64,000 nucleotides of DNA from sequence record MG752970.1. The stretch is one strand, 5' to 3'. The stretch's first letter is position 1. Each line of letters opens with the position of its first letter. Positions 9,102 through 29,904 of the stretch are shown here, piece after piece. A model generated the notes under the pieces. It made no database searches and was not told where the DNA came from. It saw only the letters and a list, made by a program, of their open reading frames with translations. The position numbers and the translations under genes are program-made.

Positions 9102-10826
9102 ATGGGAACACTCACGAATTACTACCGAATAGTCCAACCAGCGTCACCGAAACAAGCATACACTACAACAGATAATGAGCTTGTTTCACGCTATCAGAAC
9201 TATTCATGGTACAACGCTGTCGTAAAGTCAGCATCTACAAGACTCGCACGTTACAAACAATATGAGATGATGGATCGTGACGTGGATATTTCACGTGCAC
9301 TTGATACCATTTCTGAAGAAATGTCTACGGTGGATGAAAAGACGCATCTACCATTTCTCATCTCATATCAGAATGACGATAACGTAGAGGTTAACGAACG
9401 CTTGGTCATGACGATCAAGGCTGCCCTCCGTCATTGGTGTGATCTTCAGGATTTATACAATAGAATTTTCAGAACATGTCGCACCACCGCGAAGATGGGA
9501 GATTGCTTCTTTAGAAAAACAAGCGACCATCGTAAGTGGGAATATATCGATCCATCACTCATTTATGGTGTTGAGATGGATGAAAAAGGTGTGATCATTG
9601 CATATCATGTCAGAATGCTTGGTGCTTCTGGTACCGGTAATTCAACAGAACAAATGCAAATCATTCCGGCTGAAGGAATGATTCACTTTACGTTATCTGA
9701 TGACATGTCATCCATTGCTCCATTTGGTGATTCATTGCTTGAACCGGTTGTGAAGGTATTCAAGCAGATGACTCTACTTGAGGATGCAGTAGTTATCTAT
9801 CGTATCGTAAGAGCACCAGAACGTCGTGTATTTTACCTCGATGTAGGTGGAATGCCTCCTCACAAGGTTAAGGCGTATCTAGAATCGGTCAAGACTGAAA
9901 TGTATCAGAAACGTTTCGCCAATGAAATGGGTGGTGAAGCACAGGTTGACTCCGCATACAATCCTCAATCAATGACTCAAGACTTCTTCATGGCCACAAC
10001 GTCTGAAGGTCGTGGTACAAAGATTGAAACTCTACCAGCTGGTGAGCAGCTTGGTGAAATTACAGATCTTACATACTTCCAAAACCGCGTTGCACGCGGT
10101 CTCCGTGTTCCTACATCATACTTGAACTCTCAAGGCCAAGGGTCAGGTCAATACACTGATGGTAAGGTTGGTATCGCATACATTGAAGAACTTCGATTTG
10201 CAAACTTCGTTAAGCGTCTGCAAAACAAGGTTGAGAAGGTTTATGATCGCCAGTTCAAGGCGTATCTAGATGCATCTGGTATCAAGATTGATCATAATCT
10301 GTTTAAGCTGCAGTTACCAGAACCACAAAACTTTGCATTGTACCGTCAAGCAGCTATTGATGCTGAGCTCATCAATACGTTCAATACCGCTGAAAACATT
10401 CAGTATCTATCCAAGAGATACATTCTCAAGAGATTCCTTGGATTCACTGAAGATGATATTCAAACAAATGAAGCGATGCTACGTCAAGAGCGCAACATTC
10501 CAGACACGACTAACTTGGATGATCCTCCAATTACTGACATTCAACTCATGTACGATCCAGCAATTTACAGCGATCGTAAGGTGGATGTTCCGTCATTCGG
10601 TGGAGGAGGTGGCGGAGCTAGTGGATTCGGTGGAGGAGGAATGGATTTAGGTTCATCTCCATCTGACCTTGGTTTAGAAGAACCGGGTGGTGAGGGTGGT
10701 GCGGGTAAACCAGAGGGAGAAGCTCCTGAAGGTGGAGAATCACCAGAAGCTCCAACAGATACTGGTCCTGAGCTAGAAGCACCTGCAGCGCCAGAACCTG
10801 CTCCAGAAGCTCCACCACCAGTGTAA
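9102..10826 (+). CDS. gp20: Portal protein
   Basis: EDAVVIYRIVRAPERRVFYLDVGGMP, QDFFM, GTKIETLPAG, VPTSYL, EELRFANFV motifs of T4 gp20; acidic Gly/Pro tail. Confidence 0.96.
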   Translation: MGTLTNYYRIVQPASPKQAYTTTDNELVSRYQNYSWYNAVVKSASTRLARYKQYEMMDRDVDISRALDTISEEMSTVDEKTHLPFLISYQNDDNVEVNERLVMTIKAALRHWCDLQDLYNRIFRTCRTTAKMGDCFFRKTSDHRKWEYIDPSLIYGVEMDEKGVIIAYHVRMLGASGTGNSTEQMQIIPAEGMIHFTLSDDMSSIAPFGDSLLEPVVKVFKQMTLLEDAVVIYRIVRAPERRVFYLDVGGMPPHKVKAYLESVKTEMYQKRFANEMGGEAQVDSAYNPQSMTQDFFMATTSEGRGTKIETLPAGEQLGEITDLTYFQNRVARGLRVPTSYLNSQGQGSGQYTDGKVGIAYIEELRFANFVKRLQNKVEKVYDRQFKAYLDASGIKIDHNLFKLQLPEPQNFALYRQAAIDAELINTFNTAENIQYLSKRYILKRFLGFTEDDIQTNEAMLRQERNIPDTTNLDDPPITDIQLMYDPAIYSDRKVDVPSFGGGGGGASGFGGGGMDLGSSPSDLGLEEPGGEGGAGKPEGEAPEGGESPEAPTDTGPELEAPAAPEPAPEAPPPV

Positions 10827-11072: not shown

Positions 11073-11705
11073 GTGATTAAGCAACAAATTCTGATTGAGG
11101 AATTGACGCCAGTTCAATCCAATATCATCACCGAATCTGTATCTGGTGGTAAGGATCTGTATCTGCAAGGTATTTTCATGCAGGCAGAGTGTGTTAATGG
11201 CAATGGACGTAACTATCCAGTTGAAGAAATTGCCGCAGCAGTAAAGTACGTTAATGAAAAGATTGCTGAAGGTGTTTCAATCTGCGGTGAACTTAATCAC
11301 CCATCAGATTTGGCGATCAACCTAGAGCGTGTATCACACGTTATCACTGAAATGCACATGGAAGGTAATGATGCTATTGGTAAGGCAAAGCTTTTGAACA
11401 CCCCAATGGGTAACATTGCTAAAGCTCTTATCGATGGTGGAGTTCGTATCGGTGTTTCTTCACGTGGTACTGGTGAAGTTAATGAGGGTGTTGTATCTGG
11501 TTTCCAATTTGTTACAGTGGATATCGTTTCAACTCCGTCTGCTCCAAATGCTTTCCCATCAGTTATTTCAGAAAGCATGCAGCGCATTCAGGACGACCGT
11601 CGTATCGTCACTCTTGCTGAACACGTTTGTAATGACAAGGATGCTCAAAAGTACCTAGCAAAGGCGCTTAAGGGTTTCATTGAACAGCTTCGCAACGGTT
11701 ACTAA
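11073..11705 (+). CDS. gp21: Prohead protease
   Basis: LQGIFMQA, NGNGRNYP, GELNHP, VSH, GVSSRGTG, DIVSTPSAPNA; GTG start with AAGGAG RBS. Confidence 0.96.
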   Translation: MIKQQILIEELTPVQSNIITESVSGGKDLYLQGIFMQAECVNGNGRNYPVEEIAAAVKYVNEKIAEGVSICGELNHPSDLAINLERVSHVITEMHMEGNDAIGKAKLLNTPMGNIAKALIDGGVRIGVSSRGTGEVNEGVVSGFQFVTVDIVSTPSAPNAFPSVISESMQRIQDDRRIVTLAEHVCNDKDAQKYLAKALKGFIEQLRNGY

Positions 11706-12368: not shown

Positions 12369-13238
12369 ATGGATGAAATTCTACAAAAGCTTTTGAGTTC
12401 TGAACTATTGAGCGAAGAAACTAGAACTGAACTAACTGAACAGTTCAATCTTGCAGTAGCAGCTCTAAAGGAAGATCTCGAAGTTACGGTTAAGGCGGAA
12501 CTTACTGAACAGTTCATCAAGGAAAAGGATGCTCTAGTAGAGTCAACTGATTCCAAGGTCGAAACTCTGATCGCTAAGGAAATCGCAGAGCTTAAGGAAG
12601 ACATCGCAGCTTTCCGCGATCTAGAAGTTGAATTCGCAGAAAAGCTTCTAGAGGAAAAGCACAAGATGGCTGATACTCTAGCTGAAGAAATTGATCAACT
12701 TGTTGACAAGCTAGATCAATTCCTAGAAATGCGTCTTTCAGAAGAAATGAGCGAACTACGTGAAGACATCGACCTAGTTAAGAAGAATGAATTTGGTCGT
12801 AAGATTTTCGAAGCATTCGCAGCAGAATTTAACGTTAGCTACGCTGATGAAAAGTCATTGACTTTCAAGCTGAAGGAAGCTCAAAAGCAAGCAGCTGACG
12901 CAGAAGCTAAGATTGCAAAGCTAGAAGAATCAGTAAAGCAGACCACTCGTAAGCAAAAGCTAGATGAGTGCCTATCTACTCTAACTGGTTTCAAGCGTGA
13001 ACAAATGGAACTCCTACTTGTAAACGTTGCAACTGAGAAGCTAGATGAAGCGTATAACCGCTATATCGGCCGTATCCTTGCAGAAGACAAGAAGGACGAC
13101 AAGAAGGTTCTTTCAGAAGGCAAGAAGGTAGTTACGGGTAAAACCACTGTTGCTACTGGCGATGTACTGAATGAAGATAAAAAAGAAGATAAGACTGGTC
13201 TTCTAGCAAGACTTAAGGAACTGGGTGGCGTCAACTAA
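12369..13238 (+). CDS. gp22: Prohead scaffolding/core protein
   Basis: Acidic coiled coil with many L/I-x-E sites, GRKIFEAF motif, between gp21 and gp23. Confidence 0.9.
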   Translation: MDEILQKLLSSELLSEETRTELTEQFNLAVAALKEDLEVTVKAELTEQFIKEKDALVESTDSKVETLIAKEIAELKEDIAAFRDLEVEFAEKLLEEKHKMADTLAEEIDQLVDKLDQFLEMRLSEEMSELREDIDLVKKNEFGRKIFEAFAAEFNVSYADEKSLTFKLKEAQKQAADAEAKIAKLEESVKQTTRKQKLDECLSTLTGFKREQMELLLVNVATEKLDEAYNRYIGRILAEDKKDDKKVLSEGKKVVTGKTTVATGDVLNEDKKEDKTGLLARLKELGGVN

Positions 13239-13285: not shown

Positions 13286-14521
13286 ATGAATCTATTTGAA
13301 AATTGGGGTGACGCTAAGGGCGCTCTATTGGAAGGTCTAGCACCATCCAAGAAGAAGCTAGTTGACACTCTACTAGAAAACACGAAGTCACGCATGATTG
13401 CTGAAACGGCTGCTTCTGATGTTACATCACAAGGATCAGTTTCACAATTCAACCGTATTCTTCTTCCAATGATCCGCCGTGTTATCCCTGGCACTATTGC
13501 TACGGAACTCGTCGGTGTACAGCCAATGCATGGCCCAGTTGACCTAGTCTTCTCCATGCGCTATACCTACGGTCAAGATCTTCTAACCGGTGCGTCACTA
13601 ACTGACATCACCCATGGTAACGAAATCTTCGCTCCAGGTACTTCAACTTCTTCAAAGACCAAGCGCTTCTACACTGGTGGTATGACTGCCGGTACTGACG
13701 GTGTATTCTTCACTGCAGACGACGTTGCAACTGGTTTCGCTGCTGATACTGGTCTATTCGAATCATTCGGTGGACGTACAGCTAAGCTAGAAGTCTTGAA
13801 GCAAACTGTTACCGCTGGTACACGTAAGCTACAAGCTAAGATGACCCTAGAAGCTATGCAGGATCTATCATCCCAGCATGGTCTAGATCTAGAGTCCGAG
13901 CTAACTCGTATTCTTTCAACCACGATCGTTACCGAAATCGATAACGAAATTATCACTGACCTTCAGGTTCTAGCTGGTACTTCCGAATCATTCGATATGA
14001 ACGGTACTTTCACTGGTACTCCACACTACGTTGGTGATCGCCACGCTGTTCTAGGTGTTCTAATCAACAAGGTTGCTAACGAAATCGGTCGTAAGATCCG
14101 TCGTGGTAACGGTAACTTCGTTGTGGTTTCACCACTAGTTGCATCAGTTCTACAATCAGCAAGCAAGTCAGTATTCGCTCCAGCTGTTTCAGGAACTTTC
14201 GAAGGTCCAAACAACACCAAGATGATTGGTACCCTAAACGGCACCATCAAGGTTTACTCATACATCTACTTCGACCAAGGCACTGAGCCAGTCATCGTAG
14301 GTTATAAGGGTGGCGATGGTGAAACTGATACTGGTTACTTCTACTGCCCATACATTCCATTGGAATCAAGCGGTATCGTAACTGATCCAGTTACCTTCAA
14401 CAAGCACGTTTCACTGATGACTCGTTATGGTAAGGCTACATTCACCAACACGAGCACGTCGCTTGGTAACTCAGCTGACTATTATGGTAAGGTGACGGTT
14501 GCTAACCTAGCATTCGTTTAA
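13286..14521 (+). CDS. gp23: Major capsid protein
   Basis: LLENT, LPMIRRV, VGVQPMHGP, RKLQAKMTLEAMQDL...HGLD, EIDNEI, FYCPYIPL, MTRYG. Confidence 0.97.
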   Translation: MNLFENWGDAKGALLEGLAPSKKKLVDTLLENTKSRMIAETAASDVTSQGSVSQFNRILLPMIRRVIPGTIATELVGVQPMHGPVDLVFSMRYTYGQDLLTGASLTDITHGNEIFAPGTSTSSKTKRFYTGGMTAGTDGVFFTADDVATGFAADTGLFESFGGRTAKLEVLKQTVTAGTRKLQAKMTLEAMQDLSSQHGLDLESELTRILSTTIVTEIDNEIITDLQVLAGTSESFDMNGTFTGTPHYVGDRHAVLGVLINKVANEIGRKIRRGNGNFVVVSPLVASVLQSASKSVFAPAVSGTFEGPNNTKMIGTLNGTIKVYSYIYFDQGTEPVIVGYKGGDGETDTGYFYCPYIPLESSGIVTDPVTFNKHVSLMTRYGKATFTNTSTSLGNSADYYGKVTVANLAFV

Positions 14522-14616: not shown

Positions 14617-15249
14617 ATGATTATGAAGGCAAAAGAAAGAATCTGTAGTGATTGTGGTAAAGTAGAAATGACCGCTAGTAAATCAACCGTTTGTATTGAA
14701 TGCTACGCCACCCGTTGTAAAATTCAAAACATTATTGATGAGCAGGAATTCATATCAAATTATGGATACGAAATCTTGGAAAGATTGCCTGATACTGAAA
14801 TTGGGAATAAAAGAGCATACACTCTATTGACACCATGCGGTCATGTATGGAATTCTCGTGTTGACAATTTCAAAAAGCAAATTAAAAATTCCATGTCTAA
14901 GAATATAGCACTTCCGTGCGGAACATGCGGACCAAAACACCGTATTGCTGCATGTATGGAAGGTTACATGGAGAAACGTGGTAGAGATTATGACATAGAA
15001 GTCTGGAAGGATTATATGCTGAAGGTTCGTAAACTTTCAGATGCTACGTATCGCGAATTTAAGGAAGAGATAAATCCGAACAATCATCCGAGAGGTTTGA
15101 AGGAATGGCATCTCGATCACAAGATACCAATCATTCAATGCTTCAAGCAGGGCTGGACGCCAGAACAGGCATCAGTGAAGGAGAACTTGCAGATGTTGCA
15201 TTACATCGAAAACATTAAAAAATCAGGAAAGATTATTTCATCCGTATGA
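14617..15249 (+). CDS. HNH-family (homing-type) endonuclease with zinc fingers
   Basis: CxxC pairs; WHLDHKIPI...NLQMLHYIENIKK. Confidence 0.8.
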   Translation: MIMKAKERICSDCGKVEMTASKSTVCIECYATRCKIQNIIDEQEFISNYGYEILERLPDTEIGNKRAYTLLTPCGHVWNSRVDNFKKQIKNSMSKNIALPCGTCGPKHRIAACMEGYMEKRGRDYDIEVWKDYMLKVRKLSDATYREFKEEINPNNHPRGLKEWHLDHKIPIIQCFKQGWTPEQASVKENLQMLHYIENIKKSGKIISSV

Positions 15250-15730
15250 AAGGATTTCTGACGTAAATTTTAGATCTTTCAGCGTAGACACCTCTCATCA
15301 AATTTTCAATCATCTCGCTAGTGATCTCTCTACGACGCATCCCACTTGCTGGGAACACGTGCACTAGAATCTCCACATCATCTCCATACAGCTCCATGAT
15401 TGCGTAGACTCTGTTTCTACCTTCATGTCCTACGACTACTGGAACATCTAGTGGTCCGTCTCTATCATCGAGCATAACATCTAAGAATGGTGTTCCAATA
15501 GTTCCACCATCGATGAGGTGCTGCTTAATAGCTTCAACTGAGGTAGCATCCTCTCGTGAGAGGTGGGCGACGACCTCTAGGAACTTCTTCGCCTTCATCA
15601 CGAACTCTAGTCCAAAGTAGTTGACGTCCGCGTTGTATGGGACTGCTCCCCATCCTTTTCGGTTGTCGTAGCGCACTTGATTTAGAACGGTGACGGAGTC
15701 TTCACTTAGGAATTGTTTGAATGTTTGCAT
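15233..15730 (-). CDS. ParB/sulfiredoxin-like protein with capsid-targeting-like N-terminus
   Basis: MQTFKQFLSE; PFL...VVGHEGRNRV resembles ParB/Srx DGxHR. Confidence 0.65.
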   Translation of the reverse strand: MQTFKQFLSEDSVTVLNQVRYDNRKGWGAVPYNADVNYFGLEFVMKAKKFLEVVAHLSREDATSVEAIKQHLIDGGTIGTPFLDVMLDDRDGPLDVPVVVGHEGRNRVYAIMELYGDDVEILVHVFPASGMRRREITSEMIENLMRGVYAERSKIYVRNPFIRMK

Positions 15731-18483: not shown

Positions 18484-18705
18484 ATGAGTTGCAAATGCAC
18501 ATCGTGTTCCTGCACTACAACGTGTGGTGATGGTCGCGTAAAAGATCAGGCTGCCTCCGAACTGAAGTCATGGTTGAGCGAGAATGCCGTGATGCGATCA
18601 TGGGGTGAATACGAAGGTATCGCCGATCTGAACATGGCCGAGTTGGGTGCTCTTCGTGCTCTAGTTGAAGCGGCCATCCAAGAAAAGATTAAGAATAGAG
18701 AATAA
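18484..18705 (+). CDS. Hypothetical protein with Cys-rich N-terminus
   Basis: AAGGA RBS before ATG 18484. Confidence 0.6.
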   Translation: MSCKCTSCSCTTTCGDGRVKDQAASELKSWLSENAVMRSWGEYEGIADLNMAELGALRALVEAAIQEKIKNRE

Positions 18706-18706
18706 G

Positions 18707-20268: not shown

Positions 20269-20293
20269 AAGGGTAGCCTAGGCTACCCTTTTT
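20269..20293 (+). terminator. Terminator ending accessory block
   Basis: Perfect palindrome AAGGGTAGCCTAGGCTACCCTT plus TTT. Confidence 0.85.
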
Positions 20294-20346
20294 CATGTCC
20301 CGGATGTCCTTAGACGGAATAAATAGTCTATCATCCAGGAGACATG
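20294..20346 (+). promoter_or_regulatory. Late promoter (20319-20325) in the loop of an RBS-sequestering hairpin
   Basis: CATGTC/GACATG, TCCCGGATG/CATCCAGGA, TAGAC/GTCTA; right arm holds AGGAG. Confidence 0.7.
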
Positions 20347-20347
20347 A

Positions 20348-21829
20348 ATGTCCGAAATCCTTTCAACAACAATATCAGACCTTATTGAAGAATCCAGACG
20401 TATCAGTCCAACGTTTGAAAGAATCTCACCTACTTCAGCTAAGATTAGCTGGGTCTATCCGTCAACGTTTAGAACCTTAAATGGGGTTTTGGTTCTCCTA
20501 AGTGATTCTGCATTTAATCCATCTAATTATCCAACCGATACGGTTCGGTACACCCCTTCTACGGTTTTCTCATCGCCTGCAGACAAAATTGGTGCCGCAG
20601 TAGTTGTAGGTGCTTTCTACAATGATGTAACAACCCTAAGTGTTACTGTAACGGGATTAGATCCTGCTGTCATCTATTACGCATCTGTTCATGGTGTTTC
20701 AAATGTCATCCAGTACTATCAGAATGGTGTCCAGACATACCCAATCGAAGTAGATGTAGATCCATACACAGGTAACATCCCTGAGTCTGAGACACCTCCT
20801 GCGAACCCTACACTGGGTACGGTGTACTACAACAAATTCAACAATCAGGTTCTAATGTGGACTGGCTCTATGTGGGTACAGGCTTCAGCAGGAACTGTCC
20901 TAACTGGAACACAATTTCCGGTGGCAGGAACGGACGGCGAGTTCTTCTACCACACTAATAGACGAATTCTCTACATATGCAATGCTGGTCAGTGGACTGA
21001 GGCAAACACTGCTGACAGAGGTCAGCAAATGCAAAACAAGAAGGACATAGGAACTGATACTTCTTACGATGCTCGTCTGCAGCTTATCAATATCCTAAAG
21101 GCACAGCTGGGTTGGCCATCTATGTGCGTAGAGCTGAATGAAAACCAGTTTGACGTTGCTATTGATAATGCAATTCAAGAGCTGCGTCGCCGCACTGATG
21201 TTGCCTATCGCCGCCGCTACATTATCATGCGCCTGCAACCTGCGCAAGAAGTTTACTACCTGAATGACCCAACGGTTGGAACTACAAAGGTTACAGAGGT
21301 TTTAAAGATTCACCGTACAAACTATTTTGGTGTTCTTACATCTGGTGATAATGCAATTTACAGCCAGGTCATTTTCAACAACCTGTTCAACAATGGAAGT
21401 GATACAAATCTGGTATCAATTCACTTGCTGGCGGCATATGGAAATGAGTTTACTAAACTATTTGCGGGTGAACTTCAATTCAATTGGGATGAAACCACCC
21501 GTGAACTCTACGTTCACCGCAAGGTTGCTGGAAACGAACCTGTTGTTCTAGAGGTTTCAATGGAACGCACTGAGCAAGAATTGCTCATAGACAGATGGAC
21601 CACACAATGGATTCAAGCGTGGGCTCTTTCAGAATGCAAGTACATGCTGGGTATTATTCGTACAAAATATGCTAATCTTCCTGGAGCAAACGGTGGAATT
21701 AGCATGAATGGTGACATGTTGATTCAGGAAGCGAATACAGATCAACAAGAGTGCCTGCGTCAGATTGCTAACTATGAAGTCGGAAACGGTGGAAGTGAGT
21801 TCGGCAATTGGACCTTTACAATGGGTTAA
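20348..21829 (+). CDS. gp13: Neck protein gp13-like with long N-terminal extension
   Basis: LGWPSMCVELNENQFDVAIDNAI, WIQAWALSECK, GIIRTKY, LPGANGGISMNG. Confidence 0.88.
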   Translation: MSEILSTTISDLIEESRRISPTFERISPTSAKISWVYPSTFRTLNGVLVLLSDSAFNPSNYPTDTVRYTPSTVFSSPADKIGAAVVVGAFYNDVTTLSVTVTGLDPAVIYYASVHGVSNVIQYYQNGVQTYPIEVDVDPYTGNIPESETPPANPTLGTVYYNKFNNQVLMWTGSMWVQASAGTVLTGTQFPVAGTDGEFFYHTNRRILYICNAGQWTEANTADRGQQMQNKKDIGTDTSYDARLQLINILKAQLGWPSMCVELNENQFDVAIDNAIQELRRRTDVAYRRRYIIMRLQPAQEVYYLNDPTVGTTKVTEVLKIHRTNYFGVLTSGDNAIYSQVIFNNLFNNGSDTNLVSIHLLAAYGNEFTKLFAGELQFNWDETTRELYVHRKVAGNEPVVLEVSMERTEQELLIDRWTTQWIQAWALSECKYMLGIIRTKYANLPGANGGISMNGDMLIQEANTDQQECLRQIANYEVGNGGSEFGNWTFTMG

Positions 21830-21835
21830 TTTCAT

Positions 21836-23368
21836 ATGGCTATTCAACAACCAGATTGCAAATATCAAGCCCCCGAGCTGGATATTGGAACTCTTGATTT
21901 ATCTACCGATGATTGTATTGTCCAACATGACAACCAATACATCAACAATCTTACTGCCGAACATTTGCAGATCGCAGGAGCGCCAGTTAACGTCTTTAAA
22001 ATGTTGGGGGTGCATGAACAGGGATCTACCATTGATCTTGTAGGATCTGGTTATCCAATTTCGTCTGGAACTTCGGCAGGATACAACGCTCTGAACGCGT
22101 TCAACAGTTCCGGTGGAACTTGGAGAAGCATTCAGACTGGTGCCGCAGTTGTTACGACTCCCGCTTACATTGGATATTCGTTTGGTACCAAGAAAACGAA
22201 AGTAGGCAATCAGGAAAGATACGCACCGTCACAGCCCGTAAGATATCATGTTACGACAATTAAGTTACGTCAAGGTGATTTGCAACAAAATCGAGCTCTT
22301 CAAATTAAGGTTGAAAGATCGGATGACGGAATAAACTGGGTGCTTGTTGATTATGTTAACTTAGCAAATGATAATACTTTGCAGACGTTGAACATAAAAC
22401 AGTCGACGATGATGCAGCAATGGAGAATCAGTCCCACAATTTTTAATGGTGGCAGCGCCGATGCATGGGAAGTTGCTGAAATTCACTTACTAGATTATAG
22501 TGCAACGTCGCTTGATAATATTCAGGATTTCGTATTACTTGAGAATCGTGACAGAGATTATTCAACTACTTCAATTCAATTGAAGTGCTCATATGACATG
22601 AATGAGTCGATGACTGATCTAGCAAAATTTGGTATCATGCTTCCAGATCAGTACAACTTTGTAGTATCGTTTGCAATGATGGTGCAAAAACTAGGTCGAC
22701 CTATTGTTGTTGGCGATATAGTTGAGCTTCCATCGCAACTTCAATACGATGCAAATTTGAATTGCGTACGTAAGTATCTAGAAGTAACAGATACTATGTG
22801 GTCATCTGAAGGATTTACTCCAAGCTGGTATCCAACGCTGTTTAAATTTGTGGCTGTTCCTGCACTTGCAACCCAAGAAACACGAGATATTTTTGGAACT
22901 GCCAAGGATTACAAGAAGAGTGGTGGATCGATCAACGATTTCTTGAATGGAAATATTCCAATTGATCTTCTTAATGTGAAAGCATCCGATGATATTCAAC
23001 AACAATCTGCTGAGATGGTTCCAGAACGAGGATCTGACGTATCCGATGTCGTAAGTGGAATGGATATTAGAGACACTCGAGGATCATATGATGGAACTGA
23101 TTTATATGTTGAGGATGCAATTCCACCAAACAATCAACCTTATACCGAATTGATTAATCAATGGCCAGCCAATCCGCAGGACGGTGATTGGCATCGAATG
23201 CTGCAAGATCCTGCTCTCAGAATACCTGCAGTACTATACAGATATAACGGTGTAAAGAAGCGTTGGATTAAAGTTGAAGTCGACCGTAGAGATCCATACA
23301 TCTCATACAAGCCTACCATAAATAACATCGTGACTTCTAACACGCAATTTAACATTAATGAGAAGTGA
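21836..23368 (+). CDS. gp14: Neck protein gp14-like with discoidin (F5/8C)-like insertion
   Basis: EHLQIAGAPVNVFK, LAKFGI, LGRPIVVGDIV; insert with SSGGTW...IKVERSDDGINW...WRISP. Confidence 0.8.
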   Translation: MAIQQPDCKYQAPELDIGTLDLSTDDCIVQHDNQYINNLTAEHLQIAGAPVNVFKMLGVHEQGSTIDLVGSGYPISSGTSAGYNALNAFNSSGGTWRSIQTGAAVVTTPAYIGYSFGTKKTKVGNQERYAPSQPVRYHVTTIKLRQGDLQQNRALQIKVERSDDGINWVLVDYVNLANDNTLQTLNIKQSTMMQQWRISPTIFNGGSADAWEVAEIHLLDYSATSLDNIQDFVLLENRDRDYSTTSIQLKCSYDMNESMTDLAKFGIMLPDQYNFVVSFAMMVQKLGRPIVVGDIVELPSQLQYDANLNCVRKYLEVTDTMWSSEGFTPSWYPTLFKFVAVPALATQETRDIFGTAKDYKKSGGSINDFLNGNIPIDLLNVKASDDIQQQSAEMVPERGSDVSDVVSGMDIRDTRGSYDGTDLYVEDAIPPNNQPYTELINQWPANPQDGDWHRMLQDPALRIPAVLYRYNGVKKRWIKVEVDRRDPYISYKPTINNIVTSNTQFNINEK

Positions 23369-23369
23369 A

Positions 23370-24233
23370 ATGACATTTAAGGCATTTTTGCAAGAAACAA
23401 CCATGTCAGATACTAGCAGAGTTATTTCATTAAAAACTGCTGCAGAATTAGTACGTCAACATTGCATGGATGCTTACAATCAAACACGTAATGAACACGC
23501 GGTTTTATTTAGAGGAATTCGTTCGGTAAGTGGTAAGAACGCTCTAGCATTGGAAACAGATAGGCATGTAAGAACTGCGGCATTCACCTATAACATTGTC
23601 AATTTGCTGATGAGCAATCTTCCTGTATGGTCTGATTATCCAAAACGAAACTTATCGGCAGTATGCACAAATAGTGAAAGACGCGCAAACGATTATTCAA
23701 ATAATCCCGGTGAGGTGTTTGTAGTATTTCCTTTTAATGGGACCAAGATAGGACAGTGTAGTGAATACGATTTGTGGGAATCATTTCAAAGACTTGCACA
23801 CATTGGAACGGTAGACTTTTTTGCTGAAATTCTTACTGATTTTATGAGTGAGATGGTTGACAAAAATTTCTATACTTATTCTAAAAACAGTCAGTATGAC
23901 AAGGTTGTTGCATCCTTCGCAAAATTGGATGCTTATGCTAAGAAAATTGGCATAGAAAAGTTTAAGGAAAAAGCTAAAGAGAATGAGAATGGTGAAGTTT
24001 TGTTTAGCAAGTACAAATACGCATTGGCCGATTACGATGGAAATTTTCTAGAATCACTATCAAAACTTCTTGATCCAACAAAGAATGGTTTTAAGATTAC
24101 CACTGCTGGTCACATAGAAAAAAGTACGGATAGACTTGGTAAAGAAATGTGGTTTTCAGGTAAAGCTGTAGCGGTACCTGTTGATCTCATGGACAAATTT
24201 ATGGATTTGATGGATAAGTATGACAACGTTTAA
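23370..24233 (+). CDS. Putative ADP-ribosyltransferase-fold protein, paralogue 1
   Basis: MTFKAFLQE; LFRG, YPKRNLSAVCT, EMW. Confidence 0.55.
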   Translation: MTFKAFLQETTMSDTSRVISLKTAAELVRQHCMDAYNQTRNEHAVLFRGIRSVSGKNALALETDRHVRTAAFTYNIVNLLMSNLPVWSDYPKRNLSAVCTNSERRANDYSNNPGEVFVVFPFNGTKIGQCSEYDLWESFQRLAHIGTVDFFAEILTDFMSEMVDKNFYTYSKNSQYDKVVASFAKLDAYAKKIGIEKFKEKAKENENGEVLFSKYKYALADYDGNFLESLSKLLDPTKNGFKITTAGHIEKSTDRLGKEMWFSGKAVAVPVDLMDKFMDLMDKYDNV

Positions 24234-25137
24234 AGAATATTTGACAGAAATGACGAGGTCTGAACGATCGGAACTCGTCAAATCTACGTTTAAAGGTCTT
24301 ACTAAAGATCAAACTCTAGAATACGTGAAGACGCATTGTAAGAAGGCTCTTGCAGACTTCAAGGCGGGAAGAATTATGTTTCGTGGAATTAAAACGAAGG
24401 ATGAATACGGATTTATCAATCCATCATCAATAGAACGACAATCCGCAAACACATACAATCTTTACAACATTATTATTAGTGAGTCGTCGAATTGGGCCAA
24501 ATATCCCAAGCGTAACAAATCTGCAATATGCACTATTGACACATGGAAAGCTCAAAGATATTCATACAATGGAATGCCTCACATGGTTTTTCCGGTAGAT
24601 GGATTCTTGCTAGGTGTGTGCCCTGATCATGACATTTACGTTTCATTCAATCACACCCTTAAGGAACTACTTCATATAGCTACTCCAACATTACGAGTTT
24701 TTAATGGAATAGTTCTGGCAATCCTGGTTATGTCCGGTGTTGTGGGTTCAGCATCTACTGATTTTGCAGAATTGTTGGACAATGGATCTAGATCTGATGA
24801 AGTCTTTCACGATGCAGCAAAAGTAAAGCATCTATTTTCTGAATTTGATCGTAGATATGCCAAAGAAAAAAATCTCGATAAGCTTCTTGCCACGGTGAAG
24901 TTATCCGGTGATGGTAATGGTGCTGCAGTTACTTTAGCATTGCGTTTGTTGACTAACTATAAAGGTGATCTTTGGAAATTATGCTCACAAATTTTAGATC
25001 CAACTGCCAATGATTTTGTGTTGTTGAAGAACCAAATTCCAGAACCAGGCAAATCAAAAGAGGTTTGGACTGATTCTGATTGTATCGTAATTGAGGCTAC
25101 AGATGAAAATATCGAAGCTCTCATGTTACTAAAATGA
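24220..25137 (+). CDS. Putative ADP-ribosyltransferase-fold protein, paralogue 2
   Basis: MTTFKEYLTE; MFRG, YPKRNKSAICT, EVW. Confidence 0.55.
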   Translation: MTTFKEYLTEMTRSERSELVKSTFKGLTKDQTLEYVKTHCKKALADFKAGRIMFRGIKTKDEYGFINPSSIERQSANTYNLYNIIISESSNWAKYPKRNKSAICTIDTWKAQRYSYNGMPHMVFPVDGFLLGVCPDHDIYVSFNHTLKELLHIATPTLRVFNGIVLAILVMSGVVGSASTDFAELLDNGSRSDEVFHDAAKVKHLFSEFDRRYAKEKNLDKLLATVKLSGDGNGAAVTLALRLLTNYKGDLWKLCSQILDPTANDFVLLKNQIPEPGKSKEVWTDSDCIVIEATDENIEALMLLK

Positions 25138-25145
25138 GAAAACTT

Positions 25146-26009
25146 ATGAAGCTTGAAGATTTATTTGAAACCTCAGAGCAAGTAGAGAAGCTTGTCTCTA
25201 ATTATAAGAAAATTTCTGAAGAGACTGTTCTCAAATATTTGAAATCAGATTTTAAAAATTCATTTGACGTTATTTCCGAAACACCGTTATATAGGGGTCT
25301 ACCCTCGAATGAAGCATTCTTCTTCGTTGATCCTAAACAATTATCTAGAACCGAATTCCAGTCAAATCTTTATACGCTCATTATCGATAACAGTGAGGAA
25401 TGGGAAAATTTCCCAAAAAGATCTGAAAGTGTAATAGCTACAACGGACTTCCAAGATACTAAAACATATGGAACACCGTATTACGTAATTCCTATGGATG
25501 GATTTAAATTAGGGTGCTGCTCTGCGGATGAAATAGACGACTCATTCCAGAACGCAATGAAGGAGGTCGGTAAGGCCTCTCTGAGTGAATTTTGCGATTC
25601 GATGAAGGATCTATTGTGGCTCGTGACCGGGTGTAACCGGGAGGACCTATACACCTCAGAGGCAACATTACGTAAAGTATGTAGAAGATTTGATGCGGCA
25701 TACAGTGGAACGCACATCAAAGAATTTTTAGAAAGCAAATCCATAACATCTAAGAACAAAATGTTTGATGAAACTATGGATGATATCGGATTAGTAATGT
25801 TGCATTACTTTGATGTTCATTACGAGGGTGATGTATACGCATGGATTGAGCATATCATTAATCCAGAAGAAAATGCATTATTTGTTGAGGATAATTACGT
25901 CCCGGGTGGATACGTGGAAGTCTGGACAGATTCTCCGTGCATTTTTGTTCATGAAAAGAAGTTTAAAGAAATCCAGACAAAACTTGGCCGCAATACTAAT
26001 GGTGGATAA
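25146..26009 (+). CDS. Putative ADP-ribosyltransferase-fold protein, paralogue 3
   Basis: MKLEDLFE (start may be 25134); LYRG, FPKRSESVIAT, EVW. Confidence 0.55.
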   Translation: MKLEDLFETSEQVEKLVSNYKKISEETVLKYLKSDFKNSFDVISETPLYRGLPSNEAFFFVDPKQLSRTEFQSNLYTLIIDNSEEWENFPKRSESVIATTDFQDTKTYGTPYYVIPMDGFKLGCCSADEIDDSFQNAMKEVGKASLSEFCDSMKDLLWLVTGCNREDLYTSEATLRKVCRRFDAAYSGTHIKEFLESKSITSKNKMFDETMDDIGLVMLHYFDVHYEGDVYAWIEHIINPEENALFVEDNYVPGGYVEVWTDSPCIFVHEKKFKEIQTKLGRNTNGG

Positions 26010-26012
26010 ATA
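26006..26012 (+). promoter_or_regulatory. Late promoter box ATAAATA
   Basis: Overlaps upstream stop, precedes gp15. Confidence 0.5.
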
Positions 26013-26016
26013 AAAC

Positions 26017-26829
26017 ATGATTACTGGATATTTCTATCAACAGCAACTGAAGAGATACATAATTCAGTTCGCGGCAATTTTTGCAGGTCTCAAAGTTAAA
26101 ACCGGAAAAGGAAAAGACGGAGAGATTACTGACATCGACGTTCCTATAAGTTATGGGTCGAGAGATCGAGTTGTGTCTGCAATTGGAGCAGGATTTACGC
26201 AAAATAAACCAGTTGTAATCCCAACTATGACGTGTTATATGCAAGGTATAGATATTGCCTTGGATAGAATGAAGGGTACAGGTTTTCTTGATAGACGGGT
26301 TCATTTGCAAGCTGGTGGAATTTTCCCAGATGATCTAAAAGTTGTTGAGCGTTATATGCCAATTCCGTATGATTTGACATTTGAGCTCAACCTAGTAGCA
26401 TCCAATTCTGATCAAATGTATCAAATGCTAGAACAGATATTGGTCATGTTTGATCCTATTCTACAAATACAAACATCGGACGCTCCTTTTGATTGGACGA
26501 AAATTACATGTGTGACTCTTCAATCTGCTGGAAACGAGGAAAATTGGCCTCTTGGAACCGATAGAAGATTGATAACATGGACGTTAACATTTAAAGTGGA
26601 TGCGTATCTTGGTATTCCAGCAGATTTACGCAATCAAATTGTGAGAAACATTATCATTCAGTATGGTGACCTAGATGGTTTTACTATGAATGAATACTCG
26701 GAAGATGGAGAGATGGTTCCGTTTGTTGATCAATATGCAACATCAATAGTGCAGGGATCTCCTCTATATTATGACGGCGAGGCAGACTATGATGGAGTCT
26801 ATCAGTCGGGTGCAGGATCTGTCGAATAA
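26017..26829 (+). CDS. gp15: Tail sheath stabiliser / tail terminator
   Basis: GYFYQQQLKRYIIQFAAIF, VPISYGSR, PIPYDLTFEL, QMLEQIL..F.P. Confidence 0.9.
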   Translation: MITGYFYQQQLKRYIIQFAAIFAGLKVKTGKGKDGEITDIDVPISYGSRDRVVSAIGAGFTQNKPVVIPTMTCYMQGIDIALDRMKGTGFLDRRVHLQAGGIFPDDLKVVERYMPIPYDLTFELNLVASNSDQMYQMLEQILVMFDPILQIQTSDAPFDWTKITCVTLQSAGNEENWPLGTDRRLITWTLTFKVDAYLGIPADLRNQIVRNIIIQYGDLDGFTMNEYSEDGEMVPFVDQYATSIVQGSPLYYDGEADYDGVYQSGAGSVE

Positions 26830-26845
26830 CGTGGAAGATTAAAAT

Positions 26846-29170
26846 ATGGCAAATTTGGTTGAGGTTCCACAGTGGGAACCTAGTATATTTCAGATCGACA
26901 TAACAACTAGAGTTCTAGGTGGTACTGGAGGTCCAGCAAATACACAAGCCCAACAGCTCGCAAATAGATCGGCGTATCTTAAAAGTCAGGTTGATGGAAT
27001 ACTGGCAACTCTTGCGGCGGGCGTTCCTCATCATACACACGATGCTGCTGACATAATTTCGGGAGTTCTAGATCCTGCTCGTATGGGTCTAGGTGTGGCA
27101 AATAATTCAACATATCTGCGTGGCGATGGTGTCTGGGCGACAGTATCTCAGTATGCCCTTCCAACTGCTTCGTCAAGCGTTATAGGTGGAATTAAAGTAG
27201 GATCTGGACTGTCGATAGATGGTACCGGAATTTTATCTACCAATGTTACCACCGTAGCCGGAAGAACAGGAAATATTGTCTTGGCAGTCGCAGATGTATC
27301 TGATGCTGCATCTTCGTCGGCACTTGCTGCTTCATCTGGATCCTCATTAATTGGATTTATTTCTAGCGACACCGGATCATTGCTCAGAACAGTTCAAACG
27401 AGGTTAAGAGATTTCTATAATCTTAAGGATTATGGAGCAGTTGGTGATGGTGTTACGGATGATACCGCAGCGGTTCAGGCTGCAATTACGGCGGCCGTTA
27501 CCAAGAAAAAGGCATTGTATGTTCCTGCGGGTAATTACATGCTTAATAGTGGCATCACTATTAATGGCGTACTCACCATGTACGGTGACGGTATGCAGAA
27601 TTCCATCTTTACATACGTCCCTGTTAATGGTAATGCCTTCACATGGACAGCAGATGGATCGTATTCAAGCATTCGTGGAATAAAGCTAGCCCATACGGCT
27701 ACTAGAGTACTTGGTAACACCGCAACAGGATTTAAAACGTATACAGGCGCAGCTTGCGTGTTTTATCTATTTGATGAAGTATGGGTTGATGGTTTCCAGC
27801 TGTGGGGCTATGATGTAAATGATAGCTTTAATTGCAAATTCACAAATGGTAGAATTCGCAACAACGGTGTCCAGGCCACATTAGCCGGTGGAGGAACTAA
27901 CGGTCAGGGCGGAGGTATGCATCTATCACGCATAACTTTCACTGGGGCTGCAACGACAGGTAATGATTATAGCAACATGTATATCACCGGAAATAACTGG
28001 GGTATCCAAGTTGAACCATCAGGAAACAATAACAAGGCTTTTAACACTAGATTCGACGTGTGTATCTTCGAGTCGAACTATATCGGTGTAGATCTGCGCA
28101 ACCTTGGTACGGGTGGAATGGGTCGTTATCAGTTCCTGAACACATGTTATGGTGAGGCCAACATCTTCGCCCTCGCGATGCTGGATGAAGGTAGCAGTGT
28201 TGCATGCTATCAGAACAACACCACAGCAGGCACAGGTACTCCACCTTCCACATCGTTGGATGGTCCGGATGGTATTAACTTCACTGCTCGTTTCGTTGAG
28301 GATCGCCCATCACGTTTCCGTATTGGTAACCAGGGCGCGGCGCCGTATGATCGTTCAGTGGCTACGGCCTTCTCTGTCGATAAGGGAGAGACGACCAACT
28401 ATGTGAGCACTATCCGTGTGCTGAATCAAGGTACTCTGCAGCTTGTTGGAGGTGCTGGTTCGGCTGTTCCTGCTGTTACTATTAACTCTGGTTCAGGTAA
28501 CCCGGAAGCGTCGATTACGGCTAACAATGGCTCCCTGTACATGCGTTATAACGGTGTTGACCTAGGCACAACGTTGTACCTCAAGGTGAGTGGCACGGGT
28601 AATACTGGTTGGTTACCTCTAGGACCACAATATGGTCCTACCGCATCCCGTCCTACTTCTGCTGCTACAAACAAGGGTCAGTTCTACTACGATACTGATA
28701 TTTTGCGTGTAGTTACGGCAAACGGCTCTGGTGCTTGGAGAGAATATAACGGTTTATCTTCAGTAACTGGAACATATGCAAATATTCCGGCTGGCATAAC
28801 TGGTGCAAATTATTACGCTACTGATTTGTTTGCCAACTTCACATATGATGGCACTAGATGGGGTATGCAAACTCTACCAGTGTCATTTGTTTCGGTGGCT
28901 GCAGCGGGTAATGCTACTATTCCTACACGCGGTGGTCATGTTCTAGGAACTACAACTGGATCTGCAGTTGCTACATTCACTTTGAATCTTCCATCTGGCA
29001 CAAATGCGGCATCCGGTGATAGAGCTAGATTTACTACATCGTGCGCAATCACTGCCTTGACGGTATCATCTAGTGCGTCTATCGTAAATGCGCCATCTGC
29101 AATGTCAGCTGGACAGACAATTGAATTTGTTTACAATGGTTCTAGCACCACATGGTTTAGAACAGCATAA
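26846..29170 (+). CDS. Tail fibre/spike with pectate-lyase-like beta-helix
   Basis: NLKDYGAVGDGVTDDTAAVQAAI...LYVPAGNY; N-terminus shared with 29191 gene. Confidence 0.85.
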   Translation: MANLVEVPQWEPSIFQIDITTRVLGGTGGPANTQAQQLANRSAYLKSQVDGILATLAAGVPHHTHDAADIISGVLDPARMGLGVANNSTYLRGDGVWATVSQYALPTASSSVIGGIKVGSGLSIDGTGILSTNVTTVAGRTGNIVLAVADVSDAASSSALAASSGSSLIGFISSDTGSLLRTVQTRLRDFYNLKDYGAVGDGVTDDTAAVQAAITAAVTKKKALYVPAGNYMLNSGITINGVLTMYGDGMQNSIFTYVPVNGNAFTWTADGSYSSIRGIKLAHTATRVLGNTATGFKTYTGAACVFYLFDEVWVDGFQLWGYDVNDSFNCKFTNGRIRNNGVQATLAGGGTNGQGGGMHLSRITFTGAATTGNDYSNMYITGNNWGIQVEPSGNNNKAFNTRFDVCIFESNYIGVDLRNLGTGGMGRYQFLNTCYGEANIFALAMLDEGSSVACYQNNTTAGTGTPPSTSLDGPDGINFTARFVEDRPSRFRIGNQGAAPYDRSVATAFSVDKGETTNYVSTIRVLNQGTLQLVGGAGSAVPAVTINSGSGNPEASITANNGSLYMRYNGVDLGTTLYLKVSGTGNTGWLPLGPQYGPTASRPTSAATNKGQFYYDTDILRVVTANGSGAWREYNGLSSVTGTYANIPAGITGANYYATDLFANFTYDGTRWGMQTLPVSFVSVAAAGNATIPTRGGHVLGTTTGSAVATFTLNLPSGTNAASGDRARFTTSCAITALTVSSSASIVNAPSAMSAGQTIEFVYNGSSTTWFRTA

Positions 29171-29190: not shown

Positions 29191-29904
29191 ATGGCAAATT
29201 TGGTAGAGGTATCCCAGTGGGAGCCTTCCGTATTTCAGGTTGATATAACAACCAGAGTTTTGGGTGGAACGGGTGGCCCAGCAAATACGCAAGCCCAACA
29301 GCTTGCAAATAGAACGACATATTTGCGGGATCAAGTTAACACCATCTTGGCAACTTTGGCTGCAGGGGTGCCACATCATACTCACGATGCTGCTGATATT
29401 ATCACTGGTGTTATTCCGGTCTCGCATTTGGGGGTTGGAACGGCTGATACTACCAAATTCTTGCGTGGTGATGGTGCATGGGCGCTGCCTCCAACATATA
29501 CGCTTCAAACGGCGTCTAGTTCAGTTCTCGGCGGCGTGAAAGTTGGATCTGGTCTGTCAATAGATGGAAGTGGAGTGTTGTCAACGACGGAACTTTTGAA
29601 TGTTGTCACTCAGACAACATCATATTCTATTCCGAATGCATTAACAAATAATTCGCACATACGAATGAATTCATCAGCCGGAGTGACTGTTACTGTTCCA
29701 TCAGATGCTACCTATGCATTTCCGATCGGTACATCATTTTCTATTCGTCAAGTTGGATCTGGTCAAGTTACGGTTGCTGGAACATCTACATTTGATTTGC
29801 CAGCTAGTACAGTTGCTAAAACAAGAGTGCAAGGAAGTACTATTGCAATTATTAAGGTTGCGGCAGATGAATGGGAAGTAACAGGTGATTTAGCATCAGC
29901 ATAA
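29191..29904 (+). CDS. Short fibre/adaptor protein
   Basis: First ~130 aa near-duplicate of 26846 gene; different C-terminal beta domain. Confidence 0.8.
   Translation: MANLVEVSQWEPSVFQVDITTRVLGGTGGPANTQAQQLANRTTYLRDQVNTILATLAAGVPHHTHDAADIITGVIPVSHLGVGTADTTKFLRGDGAWALPPTYTLQTASSSVLGGVKVGSGLSIDGSGVLSTTELLNVVTQTTSYSIPNALTNNSHIRMNSSAGVTVTVPSDATYAFPIGTSFSIRQVGSGQVTVAGTSTFDLPASTVAKTRVQGSTIAIIKVAADEWEVTGDLASA

Follow-up and report, generated by a model that had tools for sequence, protein, structure and literature searches.

Three adjacent paralogous proteins of the jumbo Ralstonia phage RsoM2USA are probably cargo of the phage head, carrying an N-terminal leader like the capsid-targeting sequence (CTS) of phage T4, being cut by a gp21-type protease and leaving the head with the DNA. 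Loading into the head for delivery to the host is their most likely role because each of them starts with a near copy of the T4 capsid-targeting leader. The genes lie in a 64,000-nt stretch of sequence record MG752970.1 (hereafter, the window) as three same-strand open reading frames (ORFs), the first of which begins at either 23358 or 23370. All three are intact, without internal stops or frameshifts, and are labeled 'hypothetical protein' in GenBank (RsoM2USA_403-405; here ORF403, ORF404 and ORF405). The trio is situated in a tightly packed neck and tail-completion operon that is opened by a gene for a gp13-type adaptor and runs on into fiber genes:

20269..20290 (+), terminator-like hairpin with a 9-bp stem, upstream of the operon
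20348..21829 (+), gp13-type head-tail adaptor (phrog_211, E = 6e-51; PF26809 Phage_T4_gp13 on an ortholog)
21836..23368 (+), 510-aa 'virion structural protein' in the gp14 position (phrog_11591, E = 3.4e-29)
23370..24233 (+), paralog 1, RsoM2USA_403, 287 aa (A3 HMM, E = 1.4e-71)
24220..25137 (+), paralog 2, RsoM2USA_404, 305 aa
25134..26009 (+), paralog 3, RsoM2USA_405, 291 aa, the most divergent copy
26017..26829 (+), T4 gp15 tail sheath stabilizer / tail completion protein (PF16724, E = 1.2e-40)

An earlier note on this DNA had described a tandem trio of paralogs of about 290-305 aa, and this is borne out: the proteins are 287 (or 291), 305 and 291 aa long and share 22-28% identity in pairwise BLASTP (E = 1e-9 to 6.5e-30), which is far above chance. 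Its placement of the trio between gp14 and gp15 holds on the gp15 side, where PF16724 is matched, but not on the gp14 side, where BLASTP against T4 gp14 gave E = 1.3 and leaves the gp14 identity of the 510-aa protein unconfirmed. GenBank starts RsoM2USA_403 at 23358, making it 291 aa; the start at 23370 given in the earlier note is probably the true one, since an RBS-like GAGAAG precedes it, the stop codon of the upstream gene comes right before it, and translation from there makes the leader Glu residue 9, a position usual in the family. The gene junctions of the operon overlap or are no more than 7 nt apart, a close spacing consistent with late co-transcription, and there are no terminator-like hairpins between gp13 and gp15. 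The T4 late promoter TATAAATA has a single copy in the window, below the chance expectation and away from the operon, and a sigma-70 scan was at background level; because both scans were null, operon structure is the sole basis for the late timing.

The relationship of the three proteins is also apparent in their motifs. Every motif listed in the earlier note is found in all three: (F/Y)RG; (Y/F)PKRxxS(A/V)(V/I)(C/A)T, then a Tyr; V(F/I)P; and E(M/V)W near the C-terminus. The poorly conserved region between the motifs (approximately residues 135-241) is all-helical in the predicted models, in agreement with the divergent helical inserts that had been described. The wider family, which is unnamed, comprises 3,682 clusters at 50% identity. 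Among 144 members, R72, N78, W90, P94, R96 and E262 (ORF405 numbering) are invariant and another 17 columns are at least 90% conserved; ORF403, ORF404 and ORF405 keep 20/23, 21/23 and 18/23 of the near-invariant columns, respectively. Judged from the models, the body plan of the family is a conserved β-rich core with a variable helical insert, the latter being a likely specificity element, and the invariant polar set (three Arg, Asn, Ser, Asp and Glu) has the look of a pocket, enzymatic or ligand-binding, that accepts a phosphorylated substrate.

Libraries were searched with the single proteins, with 3-, 8- and 144-sequence profiles and with a core-only 20-sequence profile. Neither the trio nor its family profiles matched any family in Pfam, NCBIfam, PADLOC or the PDB, the sequence libraries yielding only the unnamed PHROGs 12810 and 11975 along with coiled-coil noise from the helical insert, and no fused domains were found in ten long members (373-570 aa). 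Two candidate characters were rejected: a basic, DNA-binding one like that of the T4 internal proteins (IPs), because the family has a pI of 4.7-9.7 (median 6.9), and a cysteine protease, there being no conserved His and the near-invariant Cys being missing from ORF405. The family-bearing phages are those of the T4-core jumbo group (XacN1, Atu_ph07, Salicola SCTP-2). The operon position of the trio is kept in two related contigs, in one relative the site holds four copies, the kind of array turnover expected for fast-evolving cargo, and other contigs have single copies in unrelated contexts, while a diverged fourth RsoM2USA member, ORF255 (hhalign 96.5%), is located elsewhere in the genome. 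Copy numbers across phages are 3, 4 and 11.

The leaders of the first two proteins are MTFKAFLQE (ORF403, Glu 9) and MTTFKEYLTE (ORF404, Glu 10), whereas that of ORF405 is degenerate and ends in LFE at residue 12 (residue 8 if the start is 25146); the gp21 motif [L/I]-x-Glu is thus present in the trio as LQE-9, LTE-10 and LFE-12. Likeness to the T4 CTS goes beyond this cleavage tripeptide to the hydrophobic positions 4 and 7, although it is weak in ORF405, which scores 5.1 with a leader matrix compared with 13-18 for ORF403 and ORF404; ORF404 has the top leader score of the entire RsoM2USA genome. The targeting sequence of T4 IPIII is its first 10 residues, with positions 4 and 7 serving targeting and 8 and 10 processing (PMC9026906), and T4 Alt is cleaved at ITE-6 and LTE-619 (PMC5694885). 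The corresponding T4 N-termini, taken from NC_000866, are MKTFKEF... for IPI and MKTYQEFIAE for IPII/III.

This resemblance extends to the family as a whole. The motif [LI]xE lies within the first 25 residues of 90% of the 144 members, compared with 2-33% in other 25-residue windows, the leader Glu is at residue 9-11 in 104 of 136 members, and the column consensus is M-(R/K)-(L/F)-K-x-(Y/L/I/F)-(L/I)-x-E. When the leader matrix, trained on the family, was run over all 1,151 ATG-started T4 candidates, ipII ranked 2nd, gp24 4th, ipIII 6th and gp22 11th (hypergeometric P = 9e-7); once the L/I and E positions were dropped from the matrix, ipII, ipIII and gp24 ranked 1st, 3rd and 4th of 75. Within RsoM2USA, the pattern [FL]K.[FYLIW][LI].E stands at the N-terminus of 12 distinct genes, against an expectation of 0.27 and 0-1 in control windows. 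No mutual homology was detected among these genes, which include a kinase, ORF89 and the following:

15233..15730 (-), RsoM2USA_385 (ORF385), 165 aa, leader MQTFKQFLSE, unrelated to the trio, with relatives that are 67-70% identical

Searches of Pfam, PHROG and PADLOC gave no match for RsoM2USA_385. Because 12 mutually unrelated genes of one phage carry it N-terminally, the leader appears to behave as a signal and not as family baggage. In the gp53-gp63 array of the Agrobacterium phage Atu_ph07 the leaders are 70% identical, compared with 32% for the bodies; within the stretch examined there, the leader is found on family members only, so in that phage it could be ordinary family conservation.

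As in T4, the leader occurs in a phage with a gp21-type protease and a T4-type head, the genes for which are in the window:

9102..10826 (+), T4 gp20-type portal (PF07230, E = 3.8e-93)
11073..11705 (+), T4 gp21-type prohead serine protease (PF03420 Peptidase_S77, E = 2.6e-29; phrog_207)
12369..13238 (+), coiled-coil, LxE-rich protein between the protease and capsid genes (by position and composition)
13286..14521 (+), T4 gp23-type major capsid protein (PF07068, E = 2.2e-97)

Cleavage after the leader Glu would be expected from the gp21-type protease, and the coiled-coil protein, going only by its position and composition, is a candidate scaffold or core protein onto which the leader presumably docks.

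Both homologs of the trio and other proteins with the leader have been detected in virions. The ORF89 product, which has the strict leader pattern, was identified by LC-MS/MS in RsoM2USA virions, as was ORF132 by MS, in an analysis that sampled the ten strongest gel bands only (PMC8504454). The N-terminus of ORF132, MKTFKQFLNTLME, is a close leader variant that falls outside the strict pattern. In Atu_ph07, gp53-gp63 are 11 consecutive family members. Purified virions contained all 11, each represented by 3-31 unique peptides that covered 12-46% of the sequence (PMC6102473 Table S5). An indirect hint of processing comes from gp53, an 87 kDa protein that was found mainly in a low-mass gel band (PMC6102473); its domain junction, VTE, aligns with a leader cleavage site.

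In the model we favor, the trio would be synthesized late, alongside the neck proteins, each with an N-terminal leader of approximately 9-12 residues that is related to the T4 CTS, with hydrophobic residues at the IPIII-type targeting positions followed by [L/I]-x-Glu. This leader would mediate docking on the scaffolding core during prohead assembly, whereupon the gp21-type protease would cut after the Glu to leave a mature protein of approximately 32-33 kDa inside the head, and the mature protein would most likely exit with the DNA at infection, as do T4 Alt and the internal proteins. The suggestion of the earlier note that the proteins are packaged and injected like T4 Alt is well supported by the T4-type leader, the gp21-type protease and the virion-detected homologs, and we infer the packaging of the trio itself, its cleavage at the predicted site, its ejection and any catalysis.

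The same note had identified the paralogs as ADP-ribosyltransferases (ARTs), an identity that is not supported by Pfam, by hhalign against Alt, ModA and ModB, or by Foldseek. At E <= 1, no ART family of Pfam matched the trio and none recurred in the 144 members, whereas T4 Alt, used as a positive control, matches PF03496 at 5.8e-36. Comparison by hhalign with T4 Alt, ModA, ModB and their alignment (the Alt/ModA/ModB alignment was used; a search for the Alt family gave only 98-100% identical T-even Alts) returned probabilities of 0.3-1.5%, with only 'YRG' lining up. A Foldseek comparison of predicted models with ART folds, which the note had proposed as a check, gave ART matches at noise level only. 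Predicted models with a pLDDT of 77.9 and 89.4 (the latter a confident AlphaFold model of ORF405) matched nothing in the PDB below E = 0.03 and 0.58, respectively, and the best ART matches were TccC3HVR (PDB; E = 5.6, TM 0.15-0.22) and a PolyVal ART (BFVD; E = 0.18, TM 0.14), the queries being whole models in which the core is split by the 110-residue insert. R, S and E are conserved in 98%, 98% and 100% of the family, in ART order and at strand ends in the models, but the Ser precedes [IL][IV]C where an ART would have T-[ST], two positions before the Glu there is D/N/G in place of Q/E, and the STS and [QE]xE sub-motifs are absent from the family.

We therefore consider it unlikely that the trio are mono-ADP-ribosyltransferases of the R-S-E (cholera-toxin/C3/Alt-like) type, enlarged by a long helical insertion, which would act on host RNA polymerase, defense proteins or nucleic acids after packaging and injection; this reading is compatible with packaging and rivals the head-cargo model on chemistry only. 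The models do place the conserved R (R54) at the end of one strand and the S (S99) and E (E262) where two further strands begin, the first strand being preceded by four N-terminal helices and the Ser strand followed by a helix. The best (non-significant) local hhalign match to ModB sets (I/L)YRG(I) over LYRGI, the alignment with the T4 ART profile, though at noise level, keeps the same order in both, pairing the Arg residues with each other and the Ser strand with the STS region, the PolyVal ART is the first non-family match in BFVD and TccC3HVR is in the PDB list, and T4 Alt provides a precedent for a packaged ART with a like leader. However, these matches are all at chance level (Foldseek probabilities <0.1, TM 0.14-0.22), the residues around the Ser and Glu differ as described, R72, N78, W90 and R96 are invariant without having an ART counterpart, and the core-only profile has no relative in the PDB. 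The copies may form an expanded arsenal with different targets, as the earlier note had it. Turning from chemistry to location, virion association fits the neck or tail too, and the genes are in a neck operon, both of which weigh against a place in the head; the degenerate leader of ORF405 and a family pI that, unlike that of the T4 IPs, is not basic weigh against packaging.

The position of the trio inside a tightly packed operon leading into fiber genes, which is kept in the two related contigs, would suit proteins that build or help assemble the neck, collar or whiskers and whose N-terminal motif is unrelated to head targeting, as would the whisker-like structures and many unassigned virion proteins of Atu_ph07. 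Such a role seems to us distinctly improbable given that the 11 Atu_ph07 homologs adjoin primase/helicase genes, far from the neck genes gp140 and gp143, that single copies elsewhere are in unrelated contexts, that ORF255 is away from the operon and beside a kinase, and that in T4 there is nothing between genes 14 and 15. The copy number is moreover variable, the invariant polar residues suggest a pocket and not a lattice contact, and the leader specifically matches the T4 head-targeting signal. The trio could instead be non-packaged cytoplasmic proteins, such as late metabolic or anti-defense enzymes, whose leader likeness is inherited and disused; this would accommodate the degraded leader of ORF405, and the direct virion evidence is limited to homologs and same-leader proteins. 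Those proteins are nevertheless physically in virions, the leader is conserved far beyond the body and the motif is highly specific to the N-terminus, which makes a cytoplasmic role very improbable.

Zeta-toxin/AAA_33 P-loop kinase modules occur in the 'polyvalent' delivered proteins of phages and conjugative elements, and a kinase of this type is linked to the family in two phages, being fused to one member and the immediate neighbor of another, whereas the trio itself has no P-loop. In Atu_ph07 gp53, the sole informative fusion, the family domain is joined to a Zeta_toxin/AAA_33 domain, and in RsoM2USA, ORF255 overlaps by 4 nt with ORF254, a leader-bearing kinase that is 31% identical to the kinase part of gp53 (E = 1e-31). 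Because of the fusion in one phage and the adjacency in the other, the family would be expected to share a substrate or pathway with a Zeta-toxin/AAA_33-type P-loop kinase, and since the kinase too carries the leader, it and the family member appear to be delivered together. We tentatively raise the possibility that the family represents a new, non-ART enzyme fold, loaded into the capsid through a T4-like leader in jumbo phages with T4-type heads and delivered with the genome, which together with the co-delivered Zeta-toxin-like kinase might modify a host nucleotide, cell-wall precursor or immune signaling molecule early in infection; the insert and the arrays of 3-11 copies would then reflect an arms race over targets.

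When head cargo of this kind is compared with known systems, its leader resembles that of T4 IPI, IPII and IPIII: both have approximately 10 residues with hydrophobic positions 4 and 7 and [L/I]-x-E at 8-10, agree at most residues and are found on fast-evolving proteins that are otherwise unrelated. Beyond the leader the family has no relation to the IPs, and its HMM matches nothing in T4; unlike the IPs, the trio proteins are three times larger, are not basic, have enzyme-like invariant residues and belong to a very large family with tandem arrays, and their packaging and cleavage are what we infer here. T4 Alt, which is in the capsid and enters with the DNA according to the T4 record, is similar in that it is cargo the size of an enzyme, bears a gp21 cleavage motif at its N-terminus (ITE-6) and has the order Arg...Ser...Glu, but comparisons of sequence, profile and fold detected no relation of the trio to Alt or PF03496, and Alt is a 682-aa protein with a C-terminal ART domain while the trio proteins are 287-305 aa. 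A further parallel is provided by the head paralog families of giant phages, namely A and B of SPN3US and the inner-body proteins gp93-95 of phiKZ with their relatives (pfam12699). These are multi-copy virion paralogs numbering 2-20 per related phage, from which a gp21-related protease takes off propeptides whose conservation far exceeds that of the rest of the protein; they are regarded as ejection proteins (PMC5694885). The present family likewise has multi-copy paralogs, those of Atu_ph07 being in virions, with a leader better conserved than the body, although pfam12699 neither matched the trio nor appeared among the recurring families of the 144 members. The cleavage motif in the family is the T4-like [LI]xE, in contrast to S/A-x-E in phiKZ and SPN3US (PMC9026906), and its phages are of the T4-core jumbo group, not the phiKZ group.

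In the literature searched, the T4 CTS is discussed only for T4, its close relatives and, by analogy, phiKZ-like phages. The T4 capsid-targeting sequence is a classic finding, and a near-identical 10-residue leader is now seen on a family of thousands of members in uncultured large phages and on at least a dozen unrelated genes of one jumbo phage. If this leader works as it does in T4, it would provide a simple sequence rule for recognizing those 'hypothetical proteins' of jumbo phages that are carried in the head and enter first, and it would connect a very large unnamed family with a Zeta-like kinase packaged alongside it and put that family high on the list for structure determination. The analysis also sets right an ART annotation that was appealing but lacked support, before it can spread. 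Should the tentative reading of a delivered new enzyme fold be true, the leader by itself would be enough to read from sequence which proteins thousands of uncultured large phages eject.

Window bases 20300-26900 match Ralstonia phage RsoM2USA (MG752970.1), a jumbo myovirus of 343.8 kb, at 100% identity (record coordinate minus 248,000 gives window coordinate), and all annotated features of this segment carry the GenBank label 'hypothetical protein'. The three paralogues described in the earlier note are borne out as ORF403, ORF404 and ORF405 (RsoM2USA_403-405), a same-strand trio of intact genes with 22-28% pairwise identity (BLASTP E-values of 1e-9 to 6.5e-30); all of the motifs that it listed are found in them, and the intervening variable region is all-helical in predicted models.

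20269-20290, terminator-like hairpin 5' of the gp13-like gene, the only good one
23358/23370-24233, same strand as ORF404 and ORF405, ORF403
24220-25137, same strand as ORF403 and ORF405, ORF404
25134-26009 (+), same strand as ORF403 and ORF404, ORF405

The genes of the operon overlap by 14 and 4 nt, with the other junctions a few nt apart. Genes for a gp13-type adaptor and a 510-aa virion protein precede the trio, and a clear gp15 homologue follows it. The proposed position between gp14 and gp15 holds on the gp15 side; comparison with T4 gp14 did not confirm that identity for the 510-aa protein. In T4 there is no gene between 14 and 15. An RNA ligase gene (PF09414, E 1.8e-16; 18665-19747, +) separates the head module from the neck module, a position that it keeps in relatives; T4 rnlB likewise adjoins gene 24. 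Downstream, two consecutive fibre/spike genes (26846-29170 and 29191-29904, +) have near-identical N-terminal regions of ~100 residues, followed in the former by a pectate-lyase-like domain (PF12708, E 1.1e-17), and look like two receptor-binding proteins on one common anchor. Three small tandem paralogues with hydrophobic stretches (15829-16308, 16556-17020 and 17033-17563, +) have two blocks in common, '(I/V)NFLSEQIPDV..QLL' and, at the C-terminus, 'APKIYL.EYA'; the antisense ORFs annotated across them in GenBank (RsoM2USA_386, 388 and 391) look like over-calls.

The trio belongs to a large, unnamed family of phage-borne proteins. A word-index search returned six relatives only; an exhaustive profile search returned 3,682 representatives at 50% identity (1,325 with E < 1e-30), none of which bears a name, and searches of Pfam, NCBIfam, PADLOC and PDB sequences gave no match to the family. 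Agrobacterium phage Atu_ph07 and Salicola phage SCTP-2 have members, as do several 'huge phage' assemblies and many contigs from metagenomes that carry phage genes. Copy number changes quickly, from three in RsoM2USA to four at the corresponding site of a related contig and 11 consecutive copies in Atu_ph07. In that related contig (Logan SRR31513911; L011 9138-12613) the four copies are flanked by a 518-aa protein and gp15, and the additional one, of 281 aa, has no orthologue in RsoM2USA; the ORF403 lineage (38% identity) has diverged much faster than those of ORF404 and ORF405 (71-74%). Across a 144-sequence alignment R72, N78, W90, P94, R96 and E262 (ORF405 numbering) are invariant and 17 further columns are ≥90% conserved. 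These 23 columns are kept at 20 positions in ORF403, 21 in ORF404 and 18 in ORF405, the outlier of the trio, which departs by Ser to Thr, Cys to Ala, Asp to Glu, Trp to Asp and Phe to Leu and also has the weakest leader (see below). Its orthologues are 74-84% identical, and it is therefore maintained.

The leader is an N-terminal stretch of ~10 residues ending in [LI]xE. This motif occurs within the first 25 residues of 90% of the 144 members, against 2-33% in other 25-residue windows, with the Glu at residue 9-11 in 104 of 136 and the column preferences M-(R/K)-(L/F)-K-x-(Y/L/I/F)-(L/I)-x-E, then G/S-R; in the ORF405 model, low confidence is confined to the first ~10 residues. T4 internal proteins and Alt carry N-terminal propeptides of 10-19 residues, the capsid-targeting sequence (CTS), which docks cargo on the prohead core and is then removed by the protease gp21 (PMC9026906, PMC5694885, PMC3012670). 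Targeting by the IPIII CTS depends on residues 4 and 7 and processing on residues 8 and 10 (PMC9026906), and the family leader has conserved hydrophobic residues at exactly the same functional positions; Alt is cleaved at ITE-6 and LTE-619 (PMC5694885). When a family-trained leader matrix was run on all 1,151 ATG-started T4 candidates of ≥60 aa, ipII ranked 2nd, gp24 4th, ipIII 6th, gp22 11th and gp21 33rd, with alt, whose actual site is beyond the range scanned, at 36th; by chance, at least four of the ten known gp21 substrates would reach the top eleven with a probability of 9e-7. Without the L/I and Glu columns, ipII, ipIII and gp24 ranked 1st, 3rd and 4th of 75. The likeness is visible in the records themselves: T4 IPI begins MKTFKEF and IPII/III MKTYQEFIAE, and RsoM2USA ORF404 begins MTTFKEYLTE, ORF403 MTFKAFLQE, ORF385 MQTFKQFLSE and ORF89 MKTFKQFLSE. 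The window also encodes a gp21-type protease (Peptidase_S77, E 2.6e-29), a gp20 portal and a gp23 capsid protein.

Across the RsoM2USA genome, 12 distinct and mutually unrelated genes carry [FL]K.[FYLIW][LI].E in residues 1-12 (0-1 per control window; 0.27 expected from internal density), among them ORF385, the P-loop kinase ORF254 and ORF89. ORF89 and ORF132 are among ten RsoM2USA virion proteins identified by LC-MS/MS (PMC8504454), and the N-terminus of ORF132, MKTFKQFLNTLME, is a close leader variant outside the strict pattern. Their predicted masses (28.56 and 76.62 kDa) agree with those published (28.57 and 76.64), confirming the ORF-to-coordinate mapping. ORF385 (15233-15730, -; 165 aa) lies beside the capsid gene, is unrelated to the trio, and has no family match; two related contigs conserve it at 67-70%. 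Elsewhere in the record, at about 175,000-211,000 (L021 25363 to L022 10056), an extensive tandem array (ORF274-284, 301-322 and 325-336), some 45 genes of 190-210 aa spread over both strands, includes at least two with the leader, ORF275 and ORF279. For each of the 11 Atu_ph07 members, gp53-gp63, purified virions yielded 3-31 unique peptides (PMC6102473 Table S5). Between these copies the 8-residue leader, M[RK]WxQL[TN]E, has 70% identity and the bodies 32%, the same contrast as reported for SPN3US head paralogues (PMC5694885).

The trio is probably head-packaged cargo, targeted and trimmed as in T4. The packaging proposed in the earlier note is well supported by the T4-like leader, the gp21-type protease and the homologues in Atu_ph07 virions; for ORF403-405 themselves we infer packaging, cleavage and ejection. 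The same note took the proteins to be putative ADP-ribosyltransferases (ARTs), and in the models (ORF404, 8-sequence alignment, pLDDT 77.9; ORF405, 144-sequence alignment, pLDDT 89.4, pTM 0.85) the conserved Arg, Ser and Glu do lie at strand ends, in ART order. When these models were compared with known folds using Foldseek, as it had proposed, no PDB match fell below E 0.03 (ORF404) or 0.58 (ORF405), and the sole ART listed was TccC3HVR (rank 36, E 5.6, TM 0.15-0.22). Against BFVD all 29 significant or near-significant matches were family members, the first outside the family being a PolyVal ART (E 0.18, probability 0.09, TM 0.14); the long insert could blunt such searches.

Profile comparisons lend the ART assignment no support. 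Against T4 proteins taken from NC_000866, hhalign gave the family profile 0.5% for Alt, 0.5% for ModA, 1.5% for ModB (just nine residues around YRG) and 0.27% for an alignment of the three, and a core-only profile gave 0.6%. No ART Pfam family recurs among the 144 members at E ≤ 1, whereas T4 Alt, as positive control, matches PF03496 at 5.8e-36, and the STS and [QE]xE sub-motifs are absent from the family alignment. Given the strand-end order of Arg, Ser and Glu and the possible effect of the insert on Foldseek, we keep ART activity as a reading of low probability.

A hint at function comes from Atu_ph07 gp53, in which the family domain is followed by a Zeta_toxin/AAA_33 P-loop kinase. RsoM2USA ORF255 is a fourth, diverged family member (hhalign 96.5%) and overlaps by 4 nt the leader-bearing kinase ORF254, which matches the kinase part of gp53 (31% identity, E 1e-31). 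That the two are fused in one phage and are neighbours, in matching order, in the other argues that the family protein and the kinase work together. Each gene of the ORF254-258 cluster (record 164332-167473, outside the window; L021 14332-17473) has an [L/I]xE leader, or a near variant of it, at its N-terminus; one of them, ORF257 (ITE at residue 15), encodes a virion protein confirmed by MS. In gp53 (L002 13279-15615; 778 aa), ~320 residues without a family match follow the kinase domain. In the published gel (PMC6102473) this 87-kDa protein peaked in a band of low mass, which suggests extensive processing; since its junction 'VTE' also aligns with the ORF254 leader site, internal cleavage is possible.

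The invariant Arg/Asn/Ser/Asp/Glu set of the family may form a binding pocket whose ligand is phosphorylated. CTS cargo and paralogue families of giant-phage heads are known types of system; in the CTS literature we found nothing dealing with these phages, and this family, the extension of the T4-like leader to jumbo phages and the tie to the kinase all seem to be new to the literature.
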